DNA of 64,000 nucleotides from the sequence record MZ475895.1. The stretch is one strand, 5' to 3'. Every line of letters begins with the position of its first letter. Within the stretch, counting starts at the first letter, position 1. Under the pieces are notes generated by a model. The model worked only from the letters and a program-made list of their open reading frames with translations, was not told the origin of the DNA and searched no databases. Shown here in pieces: positions 4,694-58,201 of this stretch. A program made the position numbers and the translations under genes.

Positions 4694-4701
4694 AAATTAG
4701 C
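4694..4701 (-). promoter_or_regulatory. GCTAATTT candidate late-promoter motif
   Basis: Exact octamer in the intergenic gap, 32 nt upstream of the ATG at 4662. Confidence 0.55.
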
Positions 4702-4723
4702 GACCGCGCAGATCCTAAACGGG

Positions 4724-5761
4724 TTATTCATCCAATACTCCACTTATATCTTGGAACATGTTTTTATACACGAGGCTACCTCCAAGTTTGTCCAGTCGTT
4801 CAATCGAAACATACATGTGCGGTTCTGTATTCACCTGTGCCCACTTGTTGTCTGTACTCAGGTTTTCCAAAGAAGGAATAAGAACGATGCTCAAGTTATC
4901 AGAAGCCCTAACGAAAGCCACATCGATATGATTCTTATTGATTCGAATGATGTATCGGTTGATTGCGTCCAAACCAACCGTGCGATTGAACTCTACATCA
5001 CTGACTGTATTCACCAAACTAATAAGGAAGCCTTTCGAGCGACTGTTTATGTCGAACAGCGAACTCTTCAACTCAGAGAGGGTAGTAGCCGAGAAGTGTT
5101 GAACATCATGGCCCTTGCCTCTTAGACACTCACCCAAGATGCGACTCGATTCAATGTGCGCGGTGTTGTCATCACGCATGATATAAATCGGTGCACCTCT
5201 GTTGTATGTGCGCTCGGTAATCTGCTGTATCAGGTCGCATGTAGGCTCCGTAACAGTAGACAGGCCTTTATACGCAATAACAAACTTGTCCTTGTACAGG
5301 TCGTAAATCTCAGGCGGCATGTACTTCATGTAATCATCATCAAGGCTCAAAATCAATCGAGGCTTAACGAGAGGAATCACAAGCTGCACAGACCGCAGAG
5401 CGTCCTTGTACTCCGTGTCCGATAGCACACGGTTTATAGGTAGGTACTGCACAGTCACATACGGGTCAGAGCCTGTATCGACGATAGAGCGAACGGCTGT
5501 GCTGCCTACATTAGGACCTGCGGAGAACTGAGTGATAATCATCAAACTGTTTTGGCCTAAGCCACCGCCACCAGCAACTGTAGTAGCACTACCATCTGCA
5601 TTCTGGACTGTCTTAGAGCGCGTCAGCGTTGGCGCTACTCGGTCGTCTCGTCCGTTATCGGCATATACATTAACTGCGCAACACCAGAGACAGCTTCCAA
5701 GAACGTAAGCAGCAATACGTTGTCGGGATCTGCGTCTGCCGGGTTGACGGTGTCCGGCCAT
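4724..5761 (-). CDS. Secreted protein resembling an ABC-transporter substrate-binding (type I periplasmic binding) protein
   Basis: 345 aa. Basic n-region, IAAYVLGSCLWCCAV h-region and VYA cleavage site. 'KPRLILSLDDD' resembles the PDLIIAxDD motif of ABC_sub_bind-like proteins. AAGGAG RBS 7 nt before the ATG at 5761. Confidence 0.55.
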   Translation of the reverse strand: MAGHRQPGRRRSRQRIAAYVLGSCLWCCAVNVYADNGRDDRVAPTLTRSKTVQNADGSATTVAGGGGLGQNSLMIITQFSAGPNVGSTAVRSIVDTGSDPYVTVQYLPINRVLSDTEYKDALRSVQLVIPLVKPRLILSLDDDYMKYMPPEIYDLYKDKFVIAYKGLSTVTEPTCDLIQQITERTYNRGAPIYIMRDDNTAHIESSRILGECLRGKGHDVQHFSATTLSELKSSLFDINSRSKGFLISLVNTVSDVEFNRTVGLDAINRYIIRINKNHIDVAFVRASDNLSIVLIPSLENLSTDNKWAQVNTEPHMYVSIERLDKLGGSLVYKNMFQDISGVLDE

Positions 5762-6459
5762 AATACTTCTCCTTTCTCGTCAGTGACATAAGGAATACCG
5801 GCGCCTTTACCCAATCCATGACGTAAGGCCCATACGGTGTCGGCATTCTCTTGAACGAACACAAGACCATGCACCTGTGCTTTATCCCCTGTCTGCTCAA
5901 GCGCTGTCACACGACTATCGAGTAACTGCGTTTGCGATTGGAGAGCACGAATCGATGCAAGGTTGGAGTTAACACGCGTGTTCATATTGTTGAACATGGT
6001 GAAGAAGCTGTTGTTCATCGCAGTACGGACGCTGTCCGTGTACGACTTAGGAATCAGCTCATTGCTGTCAAACGTTGTTGCGCCCGGTCGAACGAATACC
6101 TTACCTTGAAGTGTACCGCCGCTCGCACTGATAATCTGAGGTGCAGGCAGATCAGCTGCATCCCAAGTCTGAACAGTGTTCATCACAGTAGCGTAGTCCG
6201 TTTCCTCCTGCCACGTATTCTTGTACGGGCTGGTGGCTGTTTTAGACTTGCGGCGTAACACTTTCTTGTAGCTGGCGTTGGCACCATCAGCAATGATCCA
6301 GAGACCGTTCAGAGGGAATGTATGCGTAACAGGTTCAGCAAACGCCAGTATGATAATGACGTCCGCTCCTACCTTATACACAATATCATTCGACGCCGAA
6401 AGTCCCTGCTGTTGCGCAAGGCTTACGAGCGTGTCCACATAGTTAGTCAACTGGCTCAT
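5635..6459 (-). CDS. Fibre-associated structural protein: coiled coil plus C-terminal H-x-LG beta module
   Basis: 274 aa. Coiled coil MNTRVNSNLASIRALQSQTQLLDSRVTALEQ, then WALRHGLG...LTFLEAVSG. Confidence 0.7.
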   Translation of the reverse strand: MSQLTNYVDTLVSLAQQQGLSASNDIVYKVGADVIIILAFAEPVTHTFPLNGLWIIADGANASYKKVLRRKSKTATSPYKNTWQEETDYATVMNTVQTWDAADLPAPQIISASGGTLQGKVFVRPGATTFDSNELIPKSYTDSVRTAMNNSFFTMFNNMNTRVNSNLASIRALQSQTQLLDSRVTALEQTGDKAQVHGLVFVQENADTVWALRHGLGKGAGIPYVTDEKGEVLWPDTVNPADADPDNVLLLTFLEAVSGVAQLMYMPITDETTE

Positions 6460-6919: not shown

Positions 6920-6921
6920 AA

Positions 6922-7743: not shown

Positions 7744-7753
7744 GGGCTAGCTC

Positions 7754-7957
7754 CTAACCAGTCAGTGTTGTCCAATCAGGTTGGCCTGATTGACCCGCTT
7801 CGGGATTCTTAACTTTCGTGTTGTTGATTGTCATACGAATCCAACGCACAGTACCGTCAGAATCCTGCCAGCGAATCTTCGTTCCACCGTATGCTAAATT
7901 AGCTACCCATCTGTCTCTGCTAGGGTCTTTGAAAGCAAGACGTGCATAAGCAGGCAT
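7754..7957 (-). CDS. Small structural protein
   Basis: 67 aa, AGGAG RBS. Resembles the N-terminal ~45 aa of 10884..12905. Confidence 0.65.
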   Translation of the reverse strand: MPAYARLAFKDPSRDRWVANLAYGGTKIRWQDSDGTVRWIRMTINNTKVKNPEAGQSGQPDWTTLTG

Positions 7958-7966
7958 AAGTTCTCC

Positions 7967-10840: not shown

Positions 10841-10862
10841 ATTATGTCCTTAGATCGGCAAG

Positions 10863-10878
10863 AGGGGCCGAAGCCCCT
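10863..10878 (-). other. Intergenic C(UUCG)G hairpin without U-tract (stability/processing element)
   Basis: AGGGGC-TTCG-GCCCCT on the minus strand, between 10884..12905 and 7967..10840. Confidence 0.55.
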
Positions 10879-10883
10879 TCCTG

Positions 10884-14050: not shown

Positions 14051-15486
14051 TACGTCTTCTCCGCCTGAGCAGTCATATCCGTGTTATGAGCCAGAACATC
14101 ACCAACGAAATAGCAGTCGAAAGGTTCAACGTCTATGTCTACGGTATTAACGAGTTGGTCTATACGACGACATTCGTATACAGACACAGGACCTTTACGT
14201 CCTCTGACTTGCATTCCTTGCTTAACTTCACGAGCAGGAACATAGCGCCATTGCTTATCATCGTAGATCAGCACAGGATGTTCGTGCGTAAACTTCTGTC
14301 CGTTAATGACGAAGTAGTGATCTTCCTGACCGTACTTGAGTGCTCGAACAGCAGCATAGACATTCTTACCTTTCAGGCTCGGCGAGGACCATTTACGGAA
14401 CTCTTTAGGCTGATTGGAGAACGCAGCAAGCATATCGCCTACAGACAAACGCTCAACAGGCACAGAGCCTGCGATTGTATGCACGGTAGAGCCGAACACG
14501 ATACAACCAGATGTTTTACTCACAGGGTTACGTGCAACTACAGTCAGAGCAGACTTCACAGTGACTGTAGGACGAGATGGTTGCCCCATGTCTGTTACTA
14601 AACAACTGATGGTGCCTTTGATTGTACGATCAGCACCGAGACCAAGACGCAGATAGAAGTTAACTATGCAAGTGTTAGTCTCTATGGCGTCAAGATTAAC
14701 GCCCTCAGTTGTTGTGATTGTCCACTTGTACTTGTATGGACCCACACCGCCACGCGCATTGACAGGCAGATAAGCAAGCGAGGTAAATACGTCAGACCCT
14801 TGTACTGTGCGCGTGCCTACCATGTACAGACTAGACACAGAAGCAACAAGTGGGCTGATAGTAGGAAGAGGAGGTGCTGGCGATACGTTAGCAGTCGGGT
14901 ACAGCCACACGAACACGTTAGATGCAGTGGGCTGCACATTAGATAGCACAGCAGTTTCGATAGGCGCAGGACCCGTAGGACCCGTTGCGCCCGCGATACA
15001 GCTTGGACCGTCATTACCTCGTGGGCCGAGTATGCCAGTAGGACCTGTTGGACCGATAGGACCTGTTGGACCGTCTTTGCCATCAGGACCCGTGTCACCA
15101 TCAGGGCCAGTAGCACCATCACGGCCAGGCTCACCCGCAGTACCGTTCAGACCTCTAGCACCCGGGAGACCACCACAACCGTCAGCGCCAGTAGAGCCAT
15201 CACGACCGTCACGGCCATCACGACCCGCAGCGCCTGGTGCACCTCTCTTACCTTGCTTACCTGAACCAAACATTGCACTCGTAGGCAGGCCGGGGATATT
15301 AACTAAATCCCCATTCTGTTTGATGAGTACGAGCACGCCGTTCTTACTGTCAAACTTTACGCTTGCGATCTGTGTCGTTGTCAACACATCGGAGGATTCG
15401 AATTGAATACCACCAGCAACAGCAACAACGGATTTACCTTCATCGTTGCCTGTTGTCTCGATTTGCGAAAGTTTTAAGTCTGTCAT
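14050..15486 (-). CDS. Collagen-like fibre protein with C-terminal Hint (intein-like) domain
   Basis: 478 aa. About 29+3 Gly-X-Y triplets, a beta domain, then G|CIVFGSTV...FTHEHPV...[20 protein letters not shown]|T. Confidence 0.75.
14083..14505 (-). other. Hint / mini-intein domain (141 aa) within fibre gene
   Basis: Cys1, block B T-x-x-H (THEH), block F D, terminal His-Asn and Thr+1. No endonuclease insert. Confidence 0.75.
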
Positions 15487-17822
15487 TTAGGCTCGACCTT
15501 AATGCACAAGTTACCAATCAGCTTCGAACCGTAGCTCGTGATCTGAGCGTTACTGATACGCACCTTAGCGACAATATCAATAAAGCCTTGAGGTTGGTTC
15601 TCGGCTAACACAACAAGCATCTGAGTGATACTGACATTCGAATACGCGATGATCTCGGTCAGGTTTTCTGTAGAATCAACAACGTTGAAACCACTGCTAC
15701 CCGTACCTTTTAGACCACGACCGTATTCAGCCTCAGCAAGGCCCGGCGTCTTGTACGATAGAACGTACTCGATATGCTCTTTGCCGCTGGTGGCTTTGAA
15801 GCCAGGACCCAATTGACACTGGAAGTCTGCAACACAGGTAAGCATGACACCTTTCTTGAACTCGATACGCTGCGTAATCGTCAGCTCCTCTGAGTCCTCA
15901 ACATCTTGGTGGATGTTGTACATGTTCTTAGGGTCAGCTTCTTCTGCGAGCGCTTGCGTGTTGCTGATGGTGATGTTCGGCCACTCACCACTGATCTTGA
16001 TGCCTTCACCCTGAATGATTTCAGGAACGAACATAGGCACATCAATAGGCGAGAGTCCCTGACGCTTGAACATAAAGCCTGTTGGCGTAGGGATAACATC
16101 GATGATAACGCCATCAACAGAACTGTCTTTCGAGCCTACAGCCATCACGTTTTCGAAGATGGTGATTTCCACCAGCGTGTCTGCTGGGATAGGCGATACA
16201 GTCTGCAACGAGTTACCAACAACGGTGAAGTCAGAAGGATGAATCGTCAGACCACCCATCGTTGCAACAACGTGCGCTTTGTTTAGTGGGCTAGTCGGAA
16301 GAATGTATGTATCAGCATCATAAGGAAGACGATACTGAGAAACACGCATACGAGTAGACCAGTTGGCGCGTTCTTCATAGCGGGCAACATAGAAAGAATA
16401 TTTCTGGCCAGAAGGAATTGCCTGCGTTAGCGTAATCTTATTGCCGTTGTTGATCTTGTAGACTGTGGAGGGCTGCCACGTTGAGCCTACAACACAGAAG
16501 ACCATATCGGCGCTTTCGATTACTTGGCTACCCAGAGAGAACTGAGTTGTCTGACCGTCACCTACACCTTCGTACAGCTCAAACAGAACGACATGGCCTT
16601 GAGATGGTTCGATACGGAACTGTCTCAGGTCAAGCAGCATCTGCTGTTCAGGGTAGGATGAAAGCAGCAACTGATCTTCCTGAACGGAGTATGCAGTACG
16701 CGGCTGGAGAACGCCTGACGTGCCTACAAACAAATCAGTAGAGCTATCAAGAATCTCAGTCAGTTGGTAACGCAGAGCATCAGGAGTAGCTGTGGTCACA
16801 ACAGAACTAAACAGCATCTTGCCTGGGGGTACAAACAGGCTTGCGGTCGTCTGACGTGAGCCACCAACAGGACCCCAATAAGGTTCGTTGTCTGCGCCAC
16901 GCATCAATCCCCAAGTGCTTGGCACATCGTTGTTAGCAGGCCACGGGATGCCAGCGCTCGGCGTAGTTGGGTTAGTGATTCGACGCCACACAGCGATAGA
17001 CGTTTGCGCAGACACGAATGGGATAGCGCTGTCCAAGTTGACAAGCTGCTGGTTGGTGTATTTGAAGTGACGACAAGCGCCTGCACCAGTACCTGCAATA
17101 GTCTGCACGAGGACGGTCTCACCTTCTTTGAGAGAAGTAAGACTTGGAATCTTAAACGTGTTAGCGTTAATGAAACCAGTAGAGGTAATCTGACCGCTGA
17201 ACACACGGTCGTGCTCGCTGAAAGCCCAATAGTAAGAGCCTGCACCGTAGCGCGAAGCCTGACCAGGAGACTTAGAGCCATCGCTGTTGATATGCATGTC
17301 CAGCACAGACACAACGTTGAACACGTTATCGTTCAGGCTAGGCAGATTCTCCAGAGTTGCTACACTCGGGATGGACGTATAATCTGCCATCTCAACAGCA
17401 AGAATCTTCTGGACGTCCTGCGTCAAATGGATGAGCAAGCTAACGCGAGACACAGAGTTTGGAACTGCAATGATAGGCTCTTGCAGAACAACGTGACCGA
17501 AAGGACGGTTGTCTTTGAGCATGATCATCAACTCACCCACACGCTTCAATTGCTCACCAGCAGCGTAGGTCAGTTTTATATCAAAGATAAAGCGTGCGCT
17601 ATTCTCAGAGAGAACCTGTACATAGGACAGAGCACCGGAAGCAAGCTCGTTGCCAAGTAACTGCTCTGGAACCTCAGATGGGTTAGAGCCGATATAGTCA
17701 CCTGCTTTGAACGAAACTGGCTGCACAGCAATGCCGCCTGCGTTAGCGTTCGCAACGGCCTGTTCTCCCTGAGGCGTTAAACGCAGAGCGTCAACGTAGA
17801 TAGATTCATCAGCGGCCATCAA
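15483..17822 (-). CDS. Proximal tail fibre / tail-collar fibre protein
   Basis: 779 aa. N-terminus ([16 protein letters not shown]...FKAGD) resembles tail-collar fibre (DUF3751-like) domains. [10 protein letters not shown] repeats. Directly follows the wedge genes. Confidence 0.65.
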
Positions 17823-17849: not shown

Positions 17850-17857
17850 AAATTAGC
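17850..17857 (-). promoter_or_regulatory. GCTAATTT candidate late-promoter motif
   Basis: Exact octamer directly after a terminator, 28 nt upstream of the ATG at 17822. Confidence 0.6.
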
Positions 17858-17864
17858 AATAAAC

Positions 17865-17903
17865 AAAAAGGGAGCCAGGAACACGCAGCTCCAAGCTCCC
17901 TTT
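17865..17903 (-). terminator. Rho-independent terminator
   Basis: AAAGGGAGC...GCTCCCTTT stem followed by TTGTTT, after the stop at 17909. Confidence 0.7.
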
Positions 17904-17908: not shown

Positions 17909-20900
17909 CTACTGGTATCTGACGGTTAGCACAGAACTGCCGAAAGCACGCGCATTGGTACGATAGATACAGACAATATCTGTCAGGTTATCGTAGACTC
18001 TGCGCCCAACAATCGGTCCTGTTTTACCATCTGATCCCGTTACTGGCCACTGAGCACCATCAAAGCCTAACCACGCACGATTCACGTTGCCTGTAGCATC
18101 AGCAGCAGCGCTGAACACAGGCGTACCGTAATCTTGACGCACAACAAAGTAACCATATTCCTCTGTCTTAGTTGACAGTACGAACTGACCACCAGTGTTA
18201 GAGCGCAAGCGCGTAGGCAATTGATCGAGTGCAATGCTTATCGTTGTCAAACCAAATGGCGCAACACCGAAACGAGGATAGGATGAATACGCTGTCATGA
18301 AGTGGGTCTGCGTCAAACGCTGTTGCCCTTCAATGTACAGTGCTTTCACACCAAACTTGGTATCGTTAAGCAACGTACCGATAACCAGCTTACCTGTCTG
18401 AGCGTTAATGCTGATACCTTGCACGTCTACAACGTCACCCTTCTCGTTTGTTATCTGCCACAAACATTTGGCGCTAACATCTTCCTTGTCAAACGTACCA
18501 GTACGGCCGAGCAATGCGCTGATCTGCATCGCGCTATCATCGCGCACGTTAGTGTAACCACCCACAGATAAATCTTGAGGGAAGCCAACGCCCGGACAAA
18601 CGATTGTCTGTGTCAGGCTTATCGTGGTGCGTTGTTCCGTAATGATACATTCCACTTGAACAGTCTGTGGGTCCTTCGAAGCAGCAAAACTAAACGTACC
18701 ATCTTGCGCTAAGGTGAATCCAGTAGACGACTTAACAACGTTCCATTGGAATGACACAGAGTTAGCATCAGGCAGAACAGACGAGCCTGTCGCACCAGAA
18801 CGGCGTTCATAGTATGCGATAAACTTGTAGTCTTTGTTCGGCTCAATGTTTGAAGCAGGGTTCTCGATGGCACCACTAAGGATAGTGTTCAACGTTTGCA
18901 GATTAACAGTACGACTGCTGGTAATCGTTTCATCCACCAGCGAATACGGGTTCTGCTTGGTGAACGTGGCGTTGATTGTAATCAGACCATCAGACAACTG
19001 AGACTGACCGATATACAGATGACCGTTAAGCTGATCAATCGATACGCCATCAACGTTGGTGCTTTCCCCAATAGACCACAGTGCGTCTGTTGTTGTCAGC
19101 TCATCATCAGGGTCGATAATGATACGCAGCGAGAACGGAACGAACCAGCGGCCATTCTCGTACCCAACATCAGGGTTACGATCAGACACATCCCACACAA
19201 TATCAGGACCAACGATACCCATCTGACGCAGGTACGTGTTAGCCTGTACGAGGAATACAGTCAGCGTCTTCTCAATCTGATATTGGTCACATGTATAACG
19301 CGCACGCAACGTCACAGCACCATTAACGTTCTGGTTAGGTGTGATGTTACCTTCATCGTCAATCACTGCGATTATATCGTCGGTCGGCACAAGCACTGTC
19401 GTATTATTCGGACCCGCCTGTGTGTAATACTGACCAATGATAGCCCACTCGGCATACTGCTCAAGTTCGAATGTGGTAGGCTTCTCTTCCAGATATGAAC
19501 CATCAATCGTCCGCGCTACGCCACCTGTTTGATACGTGAGTACAAGCGCATAAGACTCAGACAACACGCCAGCAGAAATCTGAGTAGCACCTTCAATGCG
19601 ACTGTTGATCACATTGTTGATACTCTCTTTAGGCTTAGGCGAAACGATCAAATCAATCTTGTTGCTCACACGGAAGAACGAGGCAATCACCTGAGTATAC
19701 GTCGGATAGAGGCACTTGCCCGCTTGCAGTATCGCACCATCGTAGAACGTATTCTCCAAATCAGTCAGACTCGCAATGGAGTTGAACATAGGCAGCTTGG
19801 AGACTTTCATCGCACGGAAGTCTTTGTACGATGCAGGCGTTGAGCCTTCTACGATTTCAACAACAGCCATACCACTATAACGACCAGGCGAGAACTGTAG
19901 GACCTTGTAATCGTCTGTGTCTTTATCAGGCCAGTTGCCAGACCACTGTGCGGCAGTAACGTATTCCTGAGTACCATCTGCATAGGTCGCAAGCAAACGC
20001 ACAAAGGTACGCGTGTTCGAATACAGGGTATCAGGACATTCGATAGTGATTGAATCCACCAGCGCACGTAACGGGATAAGCTGAATGTCTCGGTAGTTTA
20101 CCAGCTCAGTGCCTTCGTACTCATAGTGCATCGTAATGCGTGCAGCACCATGCAAGTCACCTTGGAAGTAAAGCGAGTATTCATCCGACTGACGTTCCAT
20201 AATCGGGTCATACACACTGTTGGACGAGGCAGATACGTTCAGCGTTACCCAGCGAGCATAATCAGGATTGTCGGGGTCATACTGCGTTGGGTCCTGACCT
20301 TGCTCGACAGCTTCCTGTTGCAGCTTGATGGTACGCTCACGCGCTTCTTCCTTGGCGCTCGCACTCGGCACGTACTCTACGCTAACTGATGCAGCCGCAG
20401 CATACACTTGGCCATCGTTCCACAAACAAACAGTCGGCAGCATCAACGTATTACCGTTACCGATAGACGATGAGCTACGCAGATCCACCTGCTTAGGAAT
20501 CATGATAGTATCATTGATCAAGAACAGGTTCTGGTATGTCTGTGTTGTGCCTTCTGTGTAAGCAAAGCACAGAGCATAGCGCACAGCATCACCATCAACC
20601 AGAGGCGCAGTGAACTCACCGCTCTTCGGGTCAACATACGTTAGGGCATGTGTATCGGTCGCTGTGTCTGCACGACTGAACCAGACGCCTTGAACCTCTG
20701 TGTAAGCTACCACGATCGAGGGGTCACGCGCAGCAATCTGCTCAGGCGTTGCAGCGGCAAGAACATACAGCGCCATGGCTTTAGGACGAATGATTGTGCG
20801 CTCGACGATGGTGTCAGGAATAACGAGGTCAACAGTCGCAAGCGCAATCTCAGGCGCCTTCATCTTGATCTGACGCACAGCCTGAATAGGAGTGACGTCA

Positions 20901-23895: not shown

Positions 23896-24314
23896 TATTG
23901 GGCCCTCATGGCAAACGTAACTGACTGCGTGTTTTCCAGTTTAGGACAACGCCAGTTGATGGTACACACATAGGTCTGATCGTACTGAGCGCTCATACCA
24001 CACGTTGTCCGTACATCGGTAACGTCATCAGTCAACCCGTTCGCTGGGTCTTCTAGTGCGATACGCATGTAGGTTGCAATCCACTGCGCGGTCTTATCAT
24101 CAAACGGTTCGAACAGGTATTGATAGACGTCAGCACCAAACGCTTCACGCCATTTACGTGAACGCTTTCTCGTACCAACAACCATCAGAATCTTTTGGAC
24201 GATGCTATCCATGTTCTGGACGTTATCACGAGGCTCAAGATGAATCCATACGTTAACGTCACAGTAAACACGCTCGGAGACAGGCACGTCAATCAAACGA
24301 ATAGCGATAGCCAT
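23895..24314 (-). CDS. Baseplate wedge / sheath initiator (gp25-like)
   Basis: 139 aa. SIVQKILMVVGTRKRSRKWREAFGADVYQYLFEP matches the gp25/GPW pattern. Confidence 0.8.
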   Translation of the reverse strand: MAIAIRLIDVPVSERVYCDVNVWIHLEPRDNVQNMDSIVQKILMVVGTRKRSRKWREAFGADVYQYLFEPFDDKTAQWIATYMRIALEDPANGLTDDVTDVRTTCGMSAQYDQTYVCTINWRCPKLENTQSVTFAMRAQ

Positions 24315-24604
24315 TAGCCAAATCTCACGTTGTTGCTGCCATTGGATGCGGTGTCATTGCACGTATTAGGGTCACCATTGCGTTGAGCAGGCTTACCGTT
24401 AACACGCACAGTCGAACTGGAGATAGCGTAGCCCACATGTGGTGGTTTCTTAGGTGCTGAGTGGGGTTGATACGCATCACCCTGACGCACGCTTCCCTTA
24501 CCATTGATCATGACATTGGCTGAGGCTTGTACTGCGACAACAGGATAAAACCCATTGTGTCCTGTGGACAGGTCTGCGCCTAACCGAATTGCTTTCTGGC
24601 CCAT
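24314..24604 (-). CDS. PAAR-repeat spike tip protein
   Basis: 96 aa. AIRLGADLSTGH, VMINGKGSVRQGD, VRVNGKPAQRNGD, with His/Cys metal ligands. Confidence 0.9.
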   Translation of the reverse strand: MGQKAIRLGADLSTGHNGFYPVVAVQASANVMINGKGSVRQGDAYQPHSAPKKPPHVGYAISSSTVRVNGKPAQRNGDPNTCNDTASNGSNNVRFG

Positions 24605-24627
24605 TGTTATTCTCCTCTGTTAGGCAC

Positions 24628-24635
24628 AAATTAGC
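24628..24635 (-). promoter_or_regulatory. GCTAATTT candidate late-promoter motif
   Basis: Exact octamer after a terminator, 24 nt upstream of the PAAR ATG. Confidence 0.6.
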
Positions 24636-24653
24636 TTTATACGCGACAGAAAC

Positions 24654-24680
24654 AAAAACGGGCAGCCTAATGGCCACCCG
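24654..24680 (-). terminator. Rho-independent terminator
   Basis: CGGGTGGC-CATTAG-GCTGCCCG followed by TTTTT on the minus strand. Confidence 0.75.
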
Positions 24681-24703
24681 GTTCTTGCGCTTGGATTTTG
24701 TCG

Positions 24704-24865
24704 CTATTCCCACATCCCTCGAACGTGTGCCACTGTGCCCTCAAGCACGTAGCCGGAATGAATAGAGGAAGGATAGACTACCTGAGGTCCTTCCTGTAAC
24801 GATAACAACCGACCAAGCATTGCGATTGCTATCAGCGACAATATGAGCAGTACAATCGTCATCAT
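24704..24865 (-). CDS. 53-aa small membrane protein (not in ORF track)
   Basis: Manual translation MMTIVLLILSLIAIAMLGRLLSLQEGPQVVYPSSIHSGYVLEGTVAHVRGMWE*. One N-terminal TM helix. Followed by a terminator. Confidence 0.55.
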   Translation of the reverse strand: MMTIVLLILSLIAIAMLGRLLSLQEGPQVVYPSSIHSGYVLEGTVAHVRGMWE

Positions 24866-24869
24866 ATCG

Positions 24870-25875: not shown

Positions 25876-25921
25876 TATAGATATTACTATCTACAATTTT
25901 TATTTACAGATTTTTCTGAGA

Positions 25922-30212: not shown

Positions 30213-30220
30213 AAATTAGC
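30213..30220 (-). promoter_or_regulatory. GCTAATTT candidate late-promoter motif
   Basis: Exact octamer in the intergenic gap, 31 nt upstream of the ATG at 30182. Confidence 0.6.
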
Positions 30221-41627: not shown

Positions 41628-43313
41628 TTAGATTGCGCCAGACTGGATGAGTTGCAGCGCGTACTGGATATCGCCAACAGGTGGCACGATAGCAGTTACG
41701 TGAATGCGTTTAGTGTAGCGAGTCGGGTCAAGGAAAATATCGATGATCAGATCGCCACGCGCTTCGTCTTCTGCGGTGTTGTTGGTATAGTCACAAGTAA
41801 CTGCATACCAACGCAGGCCACGACCGGTCTTAATCGGTTCGAGGATTGCTTCCATCGCAGACTTCTGACGCTGCTTCAGGATGTCATCGTTCGGCTCAAA
41901 CACGGCGCTAAGGTTGTTAGCACGCGCAGATGCATGAAGCATCGCAAGCAGACGACGTACACCGATATCCTGAAGAGGAGACTTCGTGGTGTAAGTGGTA
42001 TCAGCACCCCACATGAAGATGCCTTCACCTTCGAAGATAGCAATCGGGTTGATTTGGTTCTCAACCAGAATATCGCGATCACCGAGTTTGAAGCGATAGC
42101 GCACGTCAGTAGCGAAGTCCAGTTTACCACGTTGCAGACCGCCAGGAGCAAGCCATGAAGCAACTTGGTCAGCAGTCAACATGCAGTAAGCGGAACACAC
42201 AGACGCAGGCACATAGAAGTCGCGTGCGTTGTCGTTGTCGCGTGCTTTAACATCGGAGTTAGCCAGAGAAGACCAAGAACCCGTGATAGAGAACTCAGCG
42301 TTCTGGTACTCTTTGTTGCCACGACGATACGCAACAGCGTTGTCACGACCTTGCAGCAGCACAGGGATACCGTGCGTTGCAATACAGTCCATGCGAGACT
42401 CGGCCAGGGTGTCAATCTTGTTGGCAATCACTGGATGCTCAAGACCACCAGAGCACAGGATGCCAGCTTGAATGTCTTCCCAATCGCGGTAGTTATCCCA
42501 CGCACTGACAACAGCGCTCAGACTCTGGTTAGCTATAGTTGCATCGGAGTGATCGACGTCAATAACAGCACCATCAGAACCGCCAGTAAACTGACCGTTA
42601 ACTGCATCAGGGTCCGTAGGATCAGCTGGCCCACCACCGATAGCATTGATGACCACATAGTTTGGGTCCTCCAGCAATTTGTAGTGATCGGTATTCAGCT
42701 TGACACGGATATACTTGGACGCTGTGTTGATAACGTCTTCAATATAGAACTGATTGCCAGCTTCGTCTTTGTAGTAACGAGTAGTCACCACGTGGGTTTC
42801 GAGTGCTGTCAGGTAACCTGTCTGATACACTTTGATGATGGACTTAATGCCCAGTGCATCAGTCACGTCAGGCTCAAACGTGATGTACAGGTTGTTCGCC
42901 GCTGCATACTGAGACAAGGAATAAATCAGGCAAATGTCGCGGGTAGAGAAAGCGACTTGCTCTGGGTCATCTAATCCAGCATCACCCAGAGGGCGGCAGG
43001 TGGCGAAGTTGTTATAAGTTGTGAGGAACACACCTGCGTACTTGACAGAGAGAGCGACACGCGTAATGTTCAGCTTGGTCGCCTTCGTCATCAGAATCTT
43101 AGCGATCTGAACGTTGTTGGCATACTGACCGGTCGCTGGACCAAACAGGGCATCAATCTCGTCTTTGCTTGTCACAGTTGTGTTAACGCCAACAGGACCT
43201 CGTGGGAACGGCAGCACAAGAGTACACATGCCAAAAGTGACAAGTGACGCTTGGTTACTGCGGTCGTTCTCCATCGAGTAAACCCCAGGAGAGGGGTGAT
43301 TCGGAATTAACAT
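41628..43313 (-). CDS. Tail sheath protein
   Basis: 561 aa. HPSPGVYSMEND N-terminus, WLAPGGLQRG, NQINPI, WGADT, IGVRRLL, VFEPND. Confidence 0.92.
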   Translation of the reverse strand: MLIPNHPSPGVYSMENDRSNQASLVTFGMCTLVLPFPRGPVGVNTTVTSKDEIDALFGPATGQYANNVQIAKILMTKATKLNITRVALSVKYAGVFLTTYNNFATCRPLGDAGLDDPEQVAFSTRDICLIYSLSQYAAANNLYITFEPDVTDALGIKSIIKVYQTGYLTALETHVVTTRYYKDEAGNQFYIEDVINTASKYIRVKLNTDHYKLLEDPNYVVINAIGGGPADPTDPDAVNGQFTGGSDGAVIDVDHSDATIANQSLSAVVSAWDNYRDWEDIQAGILCSGGLEHPVIANKIDTLAESRMDCIATHGIPVLLQGRDNAVAYRRGNKEYQNAEFSITGSWSSLANSDVKARDNDNARDFYVPASVCSAYCMLTADQVASWLAPGGLQRGKLDFATDVRYRFKLGDRDILVENQINPIAIFEGEGIFMWGADTTYTTKSPLQDIGVRRLLAMLHASARANNLSAVFEPNDDILKQRQKSAMEAILEPIKTGRGLRWYAVTCDYTNNTAEDEARGDLIIDIFLDPTRYTKRIHVTAIVPPVGDIQYALQLIQSGAI

Positions 43314-43355: not shown

Positions 43356-43363
43356 AAATTAGC
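43356..43363 (-). promoter_or_regulatory. GCTAATTT candidate late-promoter motif
   Basis: Exact octamer in the intergenic gap, 43 nt upstream of the sheath ATG. Confidence 0.6.
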
Positions 43364-46832: not shown

Positions 46833-48917
46833 TTATGAGCAGCGCAGACGGGCCAGTTTATCTTCGAACGAGTCAGTGGAAGCTGAACTCTGTGATTGAA
46901 TAGGTGCACTATCTTCGTCACCCAGAAGCTGCGCTGCAACGCTTGGTTGCTGCGGCTTAACAGGTGCGGTGACCTGCTGTTGAACTACAGGCTGAGCCTG
47001 CTGCACGGTACCGGCTGCGGCTTCGATTGACTGTGCAACTTCGTTCTGTGCAGTTTCAGACATAGACATAAGAGCCTGTGCTTTTGCCAGAGAAGTTGTC
47101 AGGAAATCTTTACCATGCGCGATAAACGCGTTTTGAATCAGCGCGTTCGGGTCTTTGATGCCTGCGGCAGACAGAGAGCGAACGAGAGAATCAACGATCG
47201 GGTTACGCACTTCACCCCAGTAGTTTTTGGTGATACCCAGCTGAGCAGAAGACAGGGCAGCAATCAAACGTTCCTGATGGGAAGCAACAGTGTCGTTGAT
47301 AGTAGACGATACGCTGGTGGTAGCTTCGTTGATGCGAGCATCAGATTCAGCAACCAGCAATTTGTCTACAGGCATTTCGATTTGATACGGCATAAAGCCA
47401 TACGCTTCGACTGTACCTACAACACCGCTTTGAACCAGGCTGTGTGAAACGGCACGGATGAAATTATCAGTTGCGAAAGATTTACGCGCAACTTCTTCAC
47501 CAACAACGTTAGACACAGAGTTGAACGTGGCGCGAGCAACTGGCTGGCCGTCGTAGTACATGTGTACCGATTCGACTTTACCGCCGTTAGAGCGGCTGAG
47601 GCTTACCAGGGTCGGGTCCAGTTCGCCGTACTGAGCTTGTACGGTAGACAGGCTGTCGAAGGTGCGATTAACGACTTTAGATTCGGAATCGAAGTCTTCG
47701 TCGTCGAGGTCGAGATCATCTTCTTCCAGATCTTCGTCGTCGTCGAGGTCTTCGTCTTCATCATCAGCGCCAGACTCAGAATCGAAATCTTCGTCTTCGT
47801 CGTCTTCGCCATCCAGATCGTCTTCATCCAGATCTTCGTCTTCGTCGCCTGCACCAGATTCGGAGTCGAAATCTTCGTCTTCCAAATCTTCGTCATCTTC
47901 GAGGTCTTCCTCGTCTTCGTCGTCCAGATCATCTTCATCCAGATCTTCGTCGTCGAGGTCATCCTCTTCGTCTTCGTCGAAGTCATCTTCATCGAAGTCG
48001 TCTTCATCTTCATCACCATCAGATGATTCAGAATCAAAGTCGTCGTCAGAATCTTCGTCTTCGTCGTCGAGGTCCAGATCGTCTTCGTCCAGGATATCAA
48101 TGTCGCTGTCGCTATCATCGTCACCGGAGTTAGATTCAATCGGCTCGTCGACCAGTGCCGCAGAGCAATGCGCACAGAAGACAGGCTCTTCATCGGAGCT
48201 TACAGTAAACGGCTGTTCGCATTTAGCGGAGCAGCTATAGATGTGAGCTTCGACGGTACCGTCAGCGGCAGCAGAAGACAGAGCAGTAACAGCTTCAGGA
48301 GCGTCCTGAGCATCACAGCTATCAACAGCCTGGCCGGTGTACGGGTCGAATTTGGCAACAGTAGCAGCGTTGAAGCTACCAGTGTTGGACAGCGCTGTGA
48401 ACGTTTGAGCACCAGACAGGGCCTGCGCGAAGTTGCGTTGAGCTTCTTCGGCAGTCTCGCCAGTAGCGATCAGGCTCGCGTGTTCAATCTGTTCATCAGC
48501 GTTTGCGCTCTCAGCAAGGAACTGTGATACGCGTTCATCAGTGATTTCTGACAGGTCAGCAGAGCACGACGGGCAGCAGCCCTGAACGAGCGAAGCACTG
48601 TCGCTGATAACGTGGCTACCACAACCATCCAGACAGATAGTGTAATGCGCCTTCACGTCACCAGCAGAAGACTGAGACTGAACTTCGGCTTTCTCAACCA
48701 AATCAGGATGCTCATCCAGCAGTTCGTTACCGCCGGTTGGGTTGTAGAGGTCAGCGCCACTTTGCGAAGCAAAGCCCACACCGTCAGAAGAACCATAAAT
48801 CATTAAGTTCTGGCCTAACGCAGTGCGACGAAAGTTCTCTACTGCCTGATTATGGTTTTTACCGACACACAGGATACCCGCGAGTTGGGTAATCTTTGGC
48901 ATGGTTAAAACCCTCAT
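46833..48917 (-). CDS. Putative prohead scaffold with Cys clusters and long acidic tract
   Basis: 694 aa, or start at ATG 48902 with a GAGG RBS. CxxxC/CxxC clusters and an ~150-aa D/E tract. Lies between protease and capsid genes. Confidence 0.55.
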   Translation of the reverse strand: MRVLTMPKITQLAGILCVGKNHNQAVENFRRTALGQNLMIYGSSDGVGFASQSGADLYNPTGGNELLDEHPDLVEKAEVQSQSSAGDVKAHYTICLDGCGSHVISDSASLVQGCCPSCSADLSEITDERVSQFLAESANADEQIEHASLIATGETAEEAQRNFAQALSGAQTFTALSNTGSFNAATVAKFDPYTGQAVDSCDAQDAPEAVTALSSAAADGTVEAHIYSCSAKCEQPFTVSSDEEPVFCAHCSAALVDEPIESNSGDDDSDSDIDILDEDDLDLDDEDEDSDDDFDSESSDGDEDEDDFDEDDFDEDEEDDLDDEDLDEDDLDDEDEEDLEDDEDLEDEDFDSESGAGDEDEDLDEDDLDGEDDEDEDFDSESGADDEDEDLDDDEDLEEDDLDLDDEDFDSESKVVNRTFDSLSTVQAQYGELDPTLVSLSRSNGGKVESVHMYYDGQPVARATFNSVSNVVGEEVARKSFATDNFIRAVSHSLVQSGVVGTVEAYGFMPYQIEMPVDKLLVAESDARINEATTSVSSTINDTVASHQERLIAALSSAQLGITKNYWGEVRNPIVDSLVRSLSAAGIKDPNALIQNAFIAHGKDFLTTSLAKAQALMSMSETAQNEVAQSIEAAAGTVQQAQPVVQQQVTAPVKPQQPSVAAQLLGDEDSAPIQSQSSASTDSFEDKLARLRCS
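47690..48130 (-). repeat. Low-complexity Asp/Glu codon tract (GAC/GAA/GAT) with repeated DEDFDSES
   Basis: Imperfect tandem repeats of tcgtc/ttcatc on the + strand. Confidence 0.8.
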
Positions 48918-48947: not shown

Positions 48948-48955
48948 AAATTAAC
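48948..48955 (-). promoter_or_regulatory. GTTAATTT, one-mismatch variant of the late-promoter motif
   Basis: Intergenic, 31 nt upstream of 48917. Confidence 0.45.
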
Positions 48956-51317: not shown

Positions 51318-51318
51318 G

Positions 51319-53287: not shown

Positions 53288-53298
53288 GAGTGCCTCTT

Positions 53299-54207
53299 TT
53301 ATACAAGAACGTTACCGCTATCCCACCACTTCTTGCCATAGATTTCAGACAGGCGGTAGTCAAGCACGATTGGTTGGTCAAGATCGACCTGAAGGATATC
53401 GCGACCTAGTGCAGCGCTATAAACTGTTTTCTCCTCAGTGTATACGCGTATCTCTAGTTCCATGTCGCCTTGCGAATACTTGGGAACGAACGGCACATTC
53501 AGATCGCCATTGAACCCCTGACCGAGCGTATCGTCAAAGTAAGTAGACATACGAATCTCGGTACCCTGATTGATAATGGTGGGTGCATACACCATGCGAT
53601 TATTATACGCCGTGTAGTCAGCTACCGTGGACTGTTGAAGCAGGCGGCGCTTATAGATGCGCGTTACGCCTTTGTCATCCACTACCGTACGATACTGATT
53701 GTAGAACCAGTTGATCTCATAGAACTTAACTGGCTTGAGGCCAGCAGATGAAACCAATGAGGCAGTCATACGGTGATAGGTCTTCTCCGTATTCAGACGA
53801 TAGAGCAGAATCTTAAACGCGTACCATTGGTAAACGTCTAACGTGATTGAGCCTGCATCTGATTGCTGAGTACCGTTAGTGAGGATATACGAGAAGCAAT
53901 CGCCACCAACGTAACCGCTACGGGGATCGTAAATGAACGCATCACTAAAGCTATTCAGTTCGACAGTACCCAACAGTGGGTCGCTCACTTTGATTGCAGC
54001 AAGGCGCCAACCACGCTGGGCTGGAACCTTGTCGAGAACGCCTTCTGTGGGACTGTGACCTGTTAGCTCGTCGCGTGCGCCTTGCAGAATCTGATCGATA
54101 GTGATTTCAGTTTTACCTGAGTTCTTCACACGTATCGTTCTGTTTGGTGCTATTGGCTTATAGTTGCGCCAGTAGTCAAACGTACAAGGCAAAGAGAGCA
54201 TAGTCAC
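53299..54207 (-). CDS. Structural protein with cadherin/Ig-like (Big_9-like) motif
   Basis: 302 aa. AFIYDPRSGYVGGDCFSYILTNG. Confidence 0.6.
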   Translation of the reverse strand: MTMLSLPCTFDYWRNYKPIAPNRTIRVKNSGKTEITIDQILQGARDELTGHSPTEGVLDKVPAQRGWRLAAIKVSDPLLGTVELNSFSDAFIYDPRSGYVGGDCFSYILTNGTQQSDAGSITLDVYQWYAFKILLYRLNTEKTYHRMTASLVSSAGLKPVKFYEINWFYNQYRTVVDDKGVTRIYKRRLLQQSTVADYTAYNNRMVYAPTIINQGTEIRMSTYFDDTLGQGFNGDLNVPFVPKYSQGDMELEIRVYTEEKTVYSAALGRDILQVDLDQPIVLDYRLSEIYGKKWWDSGNVLV

Positions 54208-56174
54208 TCCAACTTATATTTACGTCGGAACTCTGCTAGACCCATGACAGGAATGCCTTTGTCCATGGCCTTCTGGAGTTTCGCAGAACCCGAGCCTGGG
54301 TCTTTGGCGATAAGAATGGTTGTATCTGCTTTCATGCTATCTGAGGCAGTACCACCAAGCTCAACGATACGCTGCATCAGTTCACGATCACGAATGCCTG
54401 TGAATGCAACGTTAACGCCTTTCAGCTTAGAACTCTTCACCTGAACACGTTTCGGTGCAACCAGCTTAACACCGATTTCATTTGCAAGCTGATACGCAGA
54501 GACACACGCAAGAGCAATATCAGGCGATTTTGTTTTGATGCCGTGAATATCCGAGATAGCTTTAGCGAGCGCCAGAGGATTCTGTTTGCGCACTAGCTTG
54601 TCAAGGTCAGGCACGCTATCGACCACTTTATCAAACGTAGTGTTAGCGCCACGCATGAAGTAAGGCGAGCACGCTTTGAGCCACGTATTGACAGCAACGC
54701 CTGAGCGTAATGCTTTGAGGTCTTTCGCAAGCTGAGCGCCACGCGAGTCACCAACCACTTCACGCAGCACACCGATAGTTGCAGCGAACAAACGGGCAGG
54801 TGTATCAATGCCAGACTCTACGAGCAGCTTCGACGTACTCGGTCCTGTGTTAGCGACATCCAATCCTTTGAGGAATGAACTGAGCAGTCGAGTAGTGCCT
54901 ACCTCAGTCTTGGTATTGATAACGAACTCAACGCCATTGACTTTGTAAGGCACATCAGGCAGCTTTGGCTTCTTCGCAGGCTTGAGAATCTCCATAATGT
55001 ATGGGATTACCTTACCGCTACGAATCAGCTTAACGGTAGCACCCGGGCCAAGAGGTTTCTTAGCATGAGGTGCAGTCGCTTTGCCTTTAGGCTTGAGGTA
55101 GCCGTGCTCAACATAGAATCCATTGTGACCATTAGCACGCTGCACAGTGACGCCACCAGTCATCAACGTTGGTGGGAAGATAACAACAGGCTGCAAGATA
55201 CCGTACTTGGTTTCTTGATAGATAACATCCTCTACCTTAACGATCACTGTGTCAGCTTCTGCATTCATCTTAAACTTGAATGCGTGCTTTGGATTGGATG
55301 CAGTCGCTTTAGGGCTGGGTACATCTTCCGTGAGTACAACACCATCCAGCTCGTAGATAGCTTTAGACAGACGGCGCTCCAAGAACGCGATCAACTCATC
55401 TTCTGAATTGAAGCGCTTTGGTGGCGTATGCCTAACGACTTCGAATCCCCAGCGCTCTAGCAGGGCGAACTGCTTAGACTGTTTGAGCGTAGCACCGTCA
55501 CCGCCGATGATAGAGAAGCACACCATGCGGACGTACTTGAACTCGGACGCTGTTTCAAAGTTACGCACAAGTCCAGACGCAGCGTTACGCGCAGCCTTGA
55601 AGCGACCACCAGCAGACTCATGCATCTTAGCCATGAATGTCTTTTGAGGAATGAGTGCCTCGAAGCGCAACACCGTCTGACCTCTGACTGGAATCTTTTT
55701 AGGGATTTTCATCGCAGGGATATGATGAGACACGTCTTTGCCGTGAGTAGCATCACCACGAGTGTACGCCTTTACGGGCACACCGTCTTGATACACGATC
55801 TCAAGGCTCAAGCCATCGAGCTTGTCCGTTGCAACGTAGTCCACATCTTTCGACAGTGCTTTGGCAATCTGCTTCGAGCCAGCCTGAAACTGATTGAGAC
55901 TTGCCATAGGTACAGGCAGCTTAACATCTGCATCATCACGCTGACCAATCTTACGAGCCAGCTTCGACTTAGGCCATTTAGCGTCGATGTAGTTACGGAT
56001 TGAATCGTACACTGCATCGCTCACTAGACCTTCATCATCCGTATGATATGCGTTGTCCAGAGCGGTTATTAAGTTACGCACTTGCGTCTGGTTCAAGGTG
56101 TCCAAGACCTTTTGAGGGTTCTTGGACAGTTGCTTGAGACTAACAGAGGCAGAAATAGAAAGCCTTACTTTCAT
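54204..56174 (-). CDS. ligA: NAD-dependent DNA ligase
   Basis: Domain Ia AYH...VSDAVYD, KLDG motif, ELDGVV, AFKFK, OB domain RSGKVIPYI, C-terminal BRCT (VAFTG...LGG...KLQKAMDKGIPV). Confidence 0.93.
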   Translation of the reverse strand: MKVRLSISASVSLKQLSKNPQKVLDTLNQTQVRNLITALDNAYHTDDEGLVSDAVYDSIRNYIDAKWPKSKLARKIGQRDDADVKLPVPMASLNQFQAGSKQIAKALSKDVDYVATDKLDGLSLEIVYQDGVPVKAYTRGDATHGKDVSHHIPAMKIPKKIPVRGQTVLRFEALIPQKTFMAKMHESAGGRFKAARNAASGLVRNFETASEFKYVRMVCFSIIGGDGATLKQSKQFALLERWGFEVVRHTPPKRFNSEDELIAFLERRLSKAIYELDGVVLTEDVPSPKATASNPKHAFKFKMNAEADTVIVKVEDVIYQETKYGILQPVVIFPPTLMTGGVTVQRANGHNGFYVEHGYLKPKGKATAPHAKKPLGPGATVKLIRSGKVIPYIMEILKPAKKPKLPDVPYKVNGVEFVINTKTEVGTTRLLSSFLKGLDVANTGPSTSKLLVESGIDTPARLFAATIGVLREVVGDSRGAQLAKDLKALRSGVAVNTWLKACSPYFMRGANTTFDKVVDSVPDLDKLVRKQNPLALAKAISDIHGIKTKSPDIALACVSAYQLANEIGVKLVAPKRVQVKSSKLKGVNVAFTGIRDRELMQRIVELGGTASDSMKADTTILIAKDPGSGSAKLQKAMDKGIPVMGLAEFRRKYKLE

Positions 56175-56213
56175 GCTTTTCTCCGATCGACATTAACACT
56201 CTTGTTTACAGTG

Positions 56214-58160
56214 TTATGATGCGATAGGGTCCTTGTTGACCTCGTAATCTTCCGCCATGTCGTACACGCGATTGAACAGCTTAGGCGCCATATCTTTCAC
56301 ATGCTCGGCATAGTCAAACAGGTTCTGCTTACGCGCACGATTGACACGCACCTGACGTACTTCGTCTGGGCTATTCGTAATGTCGTACAGCGTATACACA
56401 ACGATGTTATCGGAGGAGTTATGAGTGCTTACCTTGAGGACTACCCAATCGCGTTGCAGTTTAGCATCAGCCTTGAAGCGGAGGACGTCGCCCTCTTCGG
56501 CCTCATCTGCACGCGCATCAGGAGTAGACTTGTTAGTTGCGGCAATCTTCTTCGCAGTCTCGGCAGCTTCTTTCTCTGCCTCAGCCACATCAGAATCTTG
56601 GTCTTCATCCGCTTCTGTTTCGTCTACGGCGTCAGAGGTATCGTCATCGGAGTCGTCGGCTTCTTCGTCGTCATCTCCAGACGTATCTTCCTCGTCATCT
56701 CCTCCGTCGTCGGCATCATCAGATTCCACATCGGAGTCGTCATCTGAATCGTCGGAGCTATCATCCCCATCCTCATCATCAGACTCTGAATCGCTATCGT
56801 CAGCATCTTCTTCTGCATCTGGATCGTCCTCTTCCGTTTCGTCGTCTGGGTCAACGTCACCGCCTTCAGGGTCATCCTCTTCCAGCTCGGAGTCGTCGTC
56901 GAGGTTATCCTCTTCTGAGTCGTCTGGCTCATCATCCTTGGTTGAGTTCTTAGCAGAGCCGCCTTTCTTGCGTACCTTAGACTTAGGAGCAACTTCCTCT
57001 TCGTCATCATCTGGTTCATCAATGTCAGACAGGTCAAGCTCGGAATCGACTTCGTTGTCTGCGCTATCATCACCGCCGAACATAGAGCTAACGGTATCCT
57101 CCAGACTGAACACATCACCTGCAAACGGGCTGCGTTGAAGAATGTCTTCAAGGCGCTGCTCATCTAGGTCCTGCTCAAGGTCCAGATGTTCTTCGATAGC
57201 ATCATCGAGGTTTTCATGCTCAATGACTTTAGGCAGACGACGACGATCATTCAGGCCAGGGTCATCAGAGTAGATGGTACGCTGTGGTCCTGTAGGCGCT
57301 TCAATCTCACCGTCACGCACTTTGCGTCTGAGGTCACGCATCTCTGCGCTACGCTCACGCGCTTTCTTACGTGCTTCCTGTGCGAGTTCCTTGCGCTGTT
57401 GTTTACGCTCAAGGGAAGATGCCTCACGACCTAAACGTTCAGCTTCCTCAAGTTCACGGCCTTCGCGATGGCGAGCGCGACGAACCATACGACGATACTG
57501 TTTGATAGTATCAACATCAACACTACCAACAGGCCAGTCATTAAGAGGCAGAATGTTTGTGTCATGCACAATCAGATCGTACTGAGCATCATCAACCTTC
57601 AGGAACAGGCCTTCTGTGTTGATAACGATACCGCCTTTGCCTTGACGCAAGAAACGCACGCCAATCATATCGTTGCGGTACATCTTATAAATACCCTTGG
57701 TAGTCTTCACAGGATATTCATTGCCTGGCACCATGCGCCATTGATAGTTGGCAAAGTCAACGCCGTACACAGCTTCTGACTTAACCGATTTCGGCATAAA
57801 GCGAGGAGCATCAAACAGGGTGCGATTGATCTTACGCTCAAGGCTCTTAGCGCCAGCAACGCGTGCAGTAGTACCAGCCTCACGTTTAACCACAGCTGGT
57901 GGCTTACGCAACTTAGAGCTACGTTCAATGAGGAACAGACCTGTCGTTTTGTCGAGAGGGAAATCGACGTGCGGCATGTCTGGGAAAATCAGTGTATAAC
58001 GACCACCATTCCTGAGTGGCAGAATACCAAAAGTGTCGCCATTACGAATCATACGTTTGTGTGATCGCTGCGTCACCTCTCGTCCACGTGAACCAGTAAA
58101 CTGCATCCACGCGTACTTCGATACGGCATCTTCATATGATGCGGATTCGGAGAGTACCAT
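56214..58160 (-). CDS. Hypothetical protein with basic coiled coil and long acidic tract
   Basis: 648 aa. N-terminal LSESA, two copies of the shared domain, an Arg-rich helix and an ~160-aa D/E tract. Confidence 0.75.
   Translation of the reverse strand: MVLSESASYEDAVSKYAWMQFTGSRGREVTQRSHKRMIRNGDTFGILPLRNGGRYTLIFPDMPHVDFPLDKTTGLFLIERSSKLRKPPAVVKREAGTTARVAGAKSLERKINRTLFDAPRFMPKSVKSEAVYGVDFANYQWRMVPGNEYPVKTTKGIYKMYRNDMIGVRFLRQGKGGIVINTEGLFLKVDDAQYDLIVHDTNILPLNDWPVGSVDVDTIKQYRRMVRRARHREGRELEEAERLGREASSLERKQQRKELAQEARKKARERSAEMRDLRRKVRDGEIEAPTGPQRTIYSDDPGLNDRRRLPKVIEHENLDDAIEEHLDLEQDLDEQRLEDILQRSPFAGDVFSLEDTVSSMFGGDDSADNEVDSELDLSDIDEPDDDEEEVAPKSKVRKKGGSAKNSTKDDEPDDSEEDNLDDDSELEEDDPEGGDVDPDDETEEDDPDAEEDADDSDSESDDEDGDDSSDDSDDDSDVESDDADDGGDDEEDTSGDDDEEADDSDDDTSDAVDETEADEDQDSDVAEAEKEAAETAKKIAATNKSTPDARADEAEEGDVLRFKADAKLQRDWVVLKVSTHNSSDNIVVYTLYDITNSPDEVRQVRVNRARKQNLFDYAEHVKDMAPKLFNRVYDMAEDYEVNKDPIAS
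56590..57080 (-). repeat. Low-complexity Asp/Glu/Ser codon tract
   Basis: Imperfect GAC/GAT/GAA repeats within 56214..58160. Confidence 0.75.
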
Positions 58161-58193
58161 GTTATTGTCTCTTTGTTATACGAACGCTCATTG

Positions 58194-58201
58194 AAATTAG
58201 C
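58194..58201 (-). promoter_or_regulatory. GCTAATTT candidate late-promoter motif
   Basis: Exact octamer after a hairpin, 34 nt upstream of the ATG at 58160. Confidence 0.6.

Follow-up and report, generated by a model that had tools for sequence, protein, structure and literature searches.

Candidate late promoters centred on TAATTT precede virion gene operons in Erwinia phage pEa_SNUABM_14

The DNA examined here, called the window throughout, is a stretch of 64,000 nucleotides (nt) covering positions 62001-126000 of Erwinia phage pEa_SNUABM_14 (MZ475895.1), a circular record of 264,285 bp whose close relatives are placed in the genus Alexandravirus. The minus strand is the coding strand for every gene of the window, and our subject is a short element, GCTAATTT, that recurs in the spacers between genes and that a first-pass annotation, made from the letters alone, had proposed as a late promoter of the phage. 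The whole record was analyzed, with the RefSeq-annotated relative pEa_SNUABM_32 (~80% identical) serving as reference annotation; genes were called with a dynamic-programming caller based on codon usage, which called 333 genes, compared with 343 annotated. Scanning the window for Rfam families and tRNAs gave no match. The copies of the element in the window, one variant copy, and the hairpins beside them are given below, with protein lengths in amino acids (aa); coordinates are those of the window unless the record is named.

4694..4701, minus strand: GCTAATTT, promoter-like site 31 nt before a 94-aa gene (4378-4662) whose operon reaches a virion structural protein gene
7896..7903, minus strand: exact intragenic GCTAATTT within a 67-aa open reading frame (7754-7957), 152 nt before the next gene
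17850..17857, minus strand: GCTAATTT site right after a strong terminator, before a 779-aa gene (15483-17822)
17862..17903 (approximate), minus strand: intrinsic terminator with GC stem and U run (-26.1 kcal/mol, z -5.8), just upstream of the 17850 site
24628..24635, minus strand: GCTAATTT site 23 nt before the PAAR spike gene (24314-24604, phrog_281) and a baseplate/tail operon
24654..24680 (approximate), minus strand: terminator hairpin (z -3.6) ending a gene-free 1.3-kb stretch, just upstream of the 24628 site
30213..30220, minus strand: GCTAATTT site 30 nt before a 166-aa gene (29682-30182), the first of a nudix/MmcB-like/dTMP-kinase operon
43356..43363, minus strand: GCTAATTT site 42 nt before the tail sheath gene (41628-43313, phrog_23)
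48948..48955, minus strand: variant GTTAATTT, 30 nt before a 694-aa ATPase-like gene (46833-48917)
58194..58201, minus strand: GCTAATTT site after a GC hairpin, 33 nt before a 648-aa gene (56214-58160)
58213..58234 (approximate), minus strand: GC-rich hairpin (z -2.9), upstream of the 58194 site

Seven exact copies of GCTAATTT are present in the window, all on the minus strand (4694, 7896, 17850, 24628, 30213, 43356, and 58194). Dinucleotide-preserving shuffles of the window give an expectation of 1.52; the largest shuffled count was 5, and none of 100 shuffles reached 7. In order of coordinate, the six intergenic copies are separated from their start codons by 31, 27-30, 23, 30, 42, and 33 nt, and this range of 23-42 nt equals the 24-43 nt originally given for six starts once both ends are counted. 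The only other exact copy, at 7896, is intragenic, as had been noted; it lacks the C(-3)/purine(+1) extension described below, its conservation is indistinguishable from that of coding sequence, and it is probably not a promoter. The one-mismatch copy reported ahead of the capsid genes was likewise found in place, the 694-aa ATPase-like gene behind GTTAATTT being followed by genes for a virion structural protein and the major head protein. The 779-aa product encoded behind the 17850 site has a weak match to the tail-collar fibre N-terminal family. Three copies had been said to follow a terminator or hairpin directly. When the 55 nt upstream of each site were folded, strong terminator hairpins were seen at 17850 and 24628 and a GC hairpin at 58194, and weaker hairpins were seen upstream of the 48948 and 43356 sites.

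Placement was then assessed over the whole genome, where the octamer occurs 13 times: 10 copies are intergenic and oriented toward a gene, 2 are intragenic in sense, and 1 is intragenic in antisense. Gene-oriented intergenic DNA makes up only ~3.5% of strand-specific positions, which gives a binomial P of 7e-13 and bears out the enrichment upstream of genes that the promoter proposal predicted. One-mismatch copies in spacers (ACTAATTT, GATAATTT, and GTTAATTT) hold only the last six bases, TAATTT, constant. This hexamer is found 50 times on the two strands together, with 25-26 copies gene-oriented in spacers and 3 in the opposite orientation (P 7e-25), and the ~27 gene-oriented sites finally recognized lie 22-78 nt before a start codon, mostly at 22-45 nt and at no constant distance. 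In an unbiased k-mer enrichment of the spacers the motif ranked among the top words, the others being terminator words and a second motif, TCTGTAAA.

Inside genes, TAATTT is avoided. In sense it occurs 14 times, where codon shuffling gives 29 ± 5.6 (expectations overall, 17-29), and in antisense only 5 times, where codon shuffling gives 57 ± 7.4 and an order-2 Markov model 26; the antisense count is the lowest of all A2T4 hexamers. A purge from both strands that is strongest in antisense matches selection against spurious promoters and runs contrary to what a signal acting at the RNA level would produce. Because it is the bare hexamer that is avoided, the hexamer alone seems to be potent during infection.

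Two further copies outside the window are worth recording in their own right. An exact GCTAATTT at record 126847, 847 nt past the window end, lies within a gene, 191 nt before a tail-sheath-like gene (record 125669-126655), and has been retained in pEa_SNUABM_32; either an internal promoter or a chance occurrence is possible. At record 177290-177760, also beyond the window, an ACTAATTT site faces ~460 nt without a called gene, reads TCTAATTT in pEa_SNUABM_32, and may serve to express a small RNA or a small gene missing from the annotation.

To describe the element itself, the 27 gene-oriented sites were aligned with TAATTT set as -12 to -7, and 15 intragenic TAATTT copies were used as controls. 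TAATTT is constant in all 27 and matches the TAnnnT pattern of sigma70-family -10 elements, in which T-12, A-11, and T-7 are the positions read by sigma region 2. Around it, A or T is found at -16 in 27/27 sites, C at -15 in 14/27, a purine at -14 in 24/27 (G in 14, A in 10), C at -13 in 15/27, and C at -3 in 14/27, while the putative +1 base, 7 nt downstream, is a purine in 23 of the 27 sites (G in 16) and in 9 of the 15 controls. None of the flank preferences is present at the intragenic controls. The constant element is therefore the hexamer TAATTT rather than the octamer, GC being merely preferred at -14/-13. In sigma70-family promoters transcription begins 6-8 nt beyond the hexamer, most often at a purine, and the putative six-base discriminator and purine start would suit this geometry. 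Columns -35 to -17 carry no information, at most ~0.2-0.5 bit each, and there is accordingly no -35 box, as had been observed for the window copies. Nor do the sites carry TG at -15/-14, as in the extended -10 promoter of the host (TGnTATAAT); -15 is mostly C. A downstream ATTCAA-like box that had been seen by eye was dropped, since the alignment left only the C at -3 and the purine at +1.

A check of the motif in related phages had been suggested, and its core is constant at orthologous sites of five or more genera, represented by pEa_SNUABM_32, Y3, JA29, PaBG, and Lu11. Of the 16 orthologous spacers of pEa_SNUABM_32, 16/16 preserve all six core bases and 15/16 the putative +1 base, although the flanks are only 75% identical on average and ~50% identical immediately beside the core; the two bases before the core vary (GC to GA, CG, AG, or TC), and the single antisense intragenic octamer is not conserved. 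The 17850 site illustrates this pattern, keeping TAATTT with GC changed to CG, as does the 4694 site, where the motif is kept and the flanks are mostly replaced. The other relatives were covered over 31-48 kb each. In Y3 (Sasquatchvirus) and Dickeya phage JA29 (Salmondvirus), TAATTT precedes the same five operons (PAAR/baseplate, nudix, tail sheath, ATPase-capsid, and the 648-aa gene) in spacers that have otherwise diverged. Thus the 24628, 30213, and 58194 sites are retained in pEa_SNUABM_32, Y3, and JA29, the 43356 site is retained before the sheath genes of these three phages and of PaBG and Lu11, and the position of the 48948 site reads ATTAATTT in Y3 and JA29 and GTAATTT in Lu11. In the Pseudomonas phages PaBG (56% GC; head protein 45% identical) and Lu11, TAATTT precedes the sheath gene along with further genes of the virion, and in Lu11 also the ATPase-like gene, and it shows an unchanged strand bias, with sense/antisense counts of 6/0 in PaBG and 5/1 in Lu11. 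In the more distant phage Motura a single TAATTT site was seen before a gene.

The genes behind TAATTT are largely those of the virion: besides the PAAR spike/baseplate genes, the tail sheath gene, and the block of ATPase, virion protein, and major head genes, they include the portal gene, a tail-fibre-like gene, and a head-tail connector operon. The second motif from the k-mer search, aaTCTGTAAA(t/c)A, occurs genome-wide in 54 sense and 3 antisense copies and precedes genes for DNA ligase, DNA polymerase, the clamp loader, SSB, and a sigma factor. It is conserved in Y3, JA29, PaBG, Lu11, and Motura, and CTGTAAA(T/C)A does not match TAnnnT. Its sites in the window are listed here.

25903..25909, minus strand: CTGTAAA, directed into the gene-free stretch 24605-25921
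31990-31996, minus strand: CTGTAAA, window site of the second motif
56205..56211, minus strand: CTGTAAA, 30 nt before the NAD-dependent DNA ligase gene (54204-56174), retained before the ligase genes of Y3 and JA29

The division of genes between the two motifs, with TAATTT as a late virion class and CTGTAAA before replication genes and the sigma gene, suggests a transcription cascade. Near-consensus sigma70 promoters number only two in the whole genome (record 259748 and 259916), both in one 355-nt spacer beyond the window (record 259696-260050) that carries TTGACC-17-TATAAT and a weaker sigma70 promoter; this spacer may be the starting point of early transcription.

Two features adjoining these motifs were recorded separately. 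The stretch 24605-25921 comprises 1.3 kb without a gene, tRNA, or Rfam match, and gaps like it occupy the corresponding position in Y3 and JA29. With CTGTAAA marking its upstream boundary and a terminator its downstream one, the stretch has the appearance of an independent transcription unit for a noncoding RNA. The genome also carries a family of terminators with near-identical stems (GGGTGGCTTCGGCTGCCC plus a T run; for example, record 19050-19090, 35860-35900, and 146590-146620), which often immediately precede a CTGTAAA or TAATTT site.

It had been suggested that a phage-encoded sigma factor or RNA polymerase (RNAP) be sought elsewhere in the genome. The first of these searches led to a gene outside the window (record 198177-199214) that is annotated "RNA polymerase sigma factor" in RefSeq and whose 345-aa product matches phrog_17569, of the same name, with an E value of 3e-156. 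The CTGTAAA site before this gene is present in both pEa_SNUABM_14 and pEa_SNUABM_32. A six-frame search of the whole genome for Sigma70_r2 gave one match, inside the same gene (E 0.004, below the cut-off). The protein has no Pfam or NCBIfam match and no meaningful PDB match by sequence; searches for sigma regions 3 and 4 gave no match, which is consistent with a promoter lacking a -35 element but may merely reflect divergence. Its PaBG homolog has an HHpred probability of 99.92% to sigma70 factors, and the Erwinia and Dickeya phages have been grouped in the same clade as PaBG (PMC7412058). No second sigma-like gene was found at E <= 1, in a search that was not aimed at the gp55 or gp33 families. 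The second search returned nothing: in six frames there was no match at E <= 1 to the RNAP beta and beta-prime subunits (Rpb2_6 and Rpb1_2), although highly divergent RNAPs may escape Pfam, and no match to T7-type RNAP, a weak null because the control matched nowhere either. Since phage RNAP genes are not detectable, the host core polymerase is presumably the enzyme used. The possibility of a phiKZ-like phage with its own polymerases was set aside on account of the Alexandravirus genus, the small HK97-type head protein (366 aa), and the lack of RNAP matches.

Taken together, these results make it probable, in our judgment, that the phage has a late promoter specific to it, with GCTAATTT as the most frequent form, read by the host core polymerase with a phage-encoded sigma factor. 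The recognition core of this promoter would be TAATTT at -12 to -7, with A or T at -16, a purine at -14, C at -13, C at -3, a purine at +1, and no -35 element. In the scheme that we propose, a few host-type promoters would be active first; the CTGTAAA class would then drive the replication genes and the sigma gene; and the divergent sigma70-family factor would in turn redirect host core polymerase to the ~27 TAATTT sites, turning on the virion genes. The assignment of this factor to TAATTT rather than to CTGTAAA is suggested by the match to TAnnnT and by the CTGTAAA site before the sigma gene. The idea first put forward, that of a solitary -10-like late promoter recognized by a phage sigma factor, thus fits the placement, avoidance, and conservation of the motif, its virion genes, the lack of a -35 box, the presence of a sigma gene, and the failure to detect an RNAP; promoter function, start-site position, late timing, and the identity of the reader are predictions from sequence. 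The accompanying analogy with the T4 octamer stood in part: the lone box without a -35 element was borne out, but the constant unit is a hexamer, and it fits TAnnnT rather than the T4 box.

Several points count against this interpretation. A few TAATTT sites precede nonstructural genes (the nudix/dTMP-kinase operon and a methyltransferase-like gene). TGTAAATA, which is one mismatch from the T4 late box and closer to it than TAATTT, stands before replication genes. The classification of spacers comes from our own gene caller, with a few sites misclassified and then corrected by eye. The sigma assignment draws on a PHROG name, a sub-threshold Pfam match, and a paper on a homolog. Finally, with two motif classes and one confident sigma factor, the factor may read CTGTAAA instead.

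This last point leads to an alternative in which TAATTT is a real late promoter read by an unrecognized phage factor, such as a small gp55-like protein, and the annotated sigma factor serves CTGTAAA. T4-like replication genes (UvsX-like recombinase, clamp loader, and topoisomerase II) are annotated, making T4-like late machinery conceivable, and PaBG has a second, weak sigma-like gene (PMC7412058). However, it is TAATTT and not CTGTAAA(T/C)A that resembles a sigma70-family element, the position of the sigma gene behind a CTGTAAA site is easier to understand if that class has a different reader, and our search detected one sigma-like gene only, the gp55 and gp33 families not being among the queries. 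We consider this alternative possible but unlikely.

It is also rather unlikely that the promoter is real and is read by host holoenzyme (sigma70 or sigmaS), possibly aided by a non-DNA-binding co-factor from the phage, with the phage sigma factor serving CTGTAAA or other sites. The bases most important to sigma70-family region 2 (T-12, A-11, and T-7) are kept, and the known hosts of the group are all gamma-proteobacteria, with near-identical sigma70. The G or A at -14 and C at -13 would also suit a host reader, as they resemble extended -10 and sigmaS promoters, sigmaS favouring C at -13. Yet A-10, T-9, and T-8 are as invariant as the rest of the core, in 27/27 sites and across genera, unlike TATAAT; without TG at -15/-14 or a -35 element, poor binding by host sigma70 is expected; and genes have been largely cleared of the bare hexamer, all of which points to a dedicated reader.

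Action at the RNA level, as an RNase E-type processing site or a leader element affecting translation, is very unlikely. The motif is strand specific and sits in 5' leaders, and its AU-rich core resembles the preference of RNase E, AAUUU fitting the RN|WUU rule; but avoidance in genes is stronger in antisense (5 versus 26-57) than in sense (14 versus 17-29), several sites come immediately after strong terminators, the distance to the ribosome-binding site varies, and a degenerate nuclease preference would not hold six bases constant across genera. That an AT-rich word has simply accumulated by chance in AT-rich spacers, a view that could appeal to a genome-wide count of 13 octamers that is not far above the uniform expectation of ~8, is refuted by the placement (P ~1e-12 to 1e-24), the 25:3 orientation bias in spacers, and the constancy of the core at orthologous sites across genera.

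Returning to the reading we favor, a phage sigma factor acting on host core at TAATTT, we advance one generalization tentatively and regard it as possible rather than probable: that the clade of PaBG, Lu11, Alexandra, Y3, and JA phages ("Lupandier") uses a two-tier promoter code without -35 elements on host core polymerase, in which a divergent sigma factor lacking a recognizable region 4 would read a -16 to +1 signal centred on TAATTT, a factor of a new kind would read CTGTAAA(T/C)A, and the code would be unchanged from Erwinia to Pseudomonas hosts. For this widespread and unstudied jumbo-phage clade, several members of which are used or proposed as biocontrol agents for fire blight and soft rot, the motif provides an operon map and a testable transcription program. 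If the pairing of TAATTT with the sigma factor is correct, a six-base signal with its matching factor would make a compact orthogonal expression switch and a comparison case for the evolution of sigma region 2 specificity.

Two observations on proteins of the window stand apart from the promoter question. The 648-aa protein encoded at 56214-58160 and another large protein encoded at 25922-27685, both on the minus strand and without an assigned function, carry a KMPT-N domain (PF20294; E 3e-17 and 8e-20, respectively). A 921-aa protein (35569-38334, minus strand) has a C-terminal domain like that of VgrG3 of the type VI secretion system (PF21277, E 3e-64) and is presumably a tail spike with a lytic domain.

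In the searchable literature we found no description of TAATTT or CTGTAAA motifs for this clade; the type of control is familiar, following T4-like logic. As the logic of T4 is repeated conceptually, the arrangement would not surprise a specialist. T4 late promoters consist of TATAAATA at -13 to -6 and are recognized by gp55 together with gp33 and the gp45 clamp. The sites described here are similar in being lone -10-region elements without a -35 box before virion genes, with a reader that we take to be a phage sigma factor on host core, in a phage that carries T4-like replication genes; they differ in that the core is TAATTT and not TATAAATA, with which GCTAATTT is only partly shared, and in that the candidate reader, a sigma70-family protein with a weak match to Sigma70_r2, has 345 aa where gp55 has 185. 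Set beside sigma70-family -10, extended -10, and sigmaS promoters, they share TAnnnT, would suit the canonical geometry with their putative six-base discriminator and +1 purine, and recall extended -10 and sigmaS preferences in the purine at -14 and C at -13, and they depart from all of these in the constant, nonconsensus A-10, T-9, and T-8, in lacking T-15/G-14 and a -35 element, and in the strict additional A/T at -16. In phage phiEco32, gp36 is a sigma70-family factor that guides host core to middle and late promoters with one -10-like element of ~9 bp; that phage belongs to an unrelated group and has another consensus. Finally, the promoters of phiKZ-like jumbo phages are read by phage multisubunit polymerases with split beta/beta-prime-like subunits, unlike those proposed here, in a genome with no detectable RNAP genes, but in both cases a jumbo phage carries short, -10-centred motifs that differ by temporal class.

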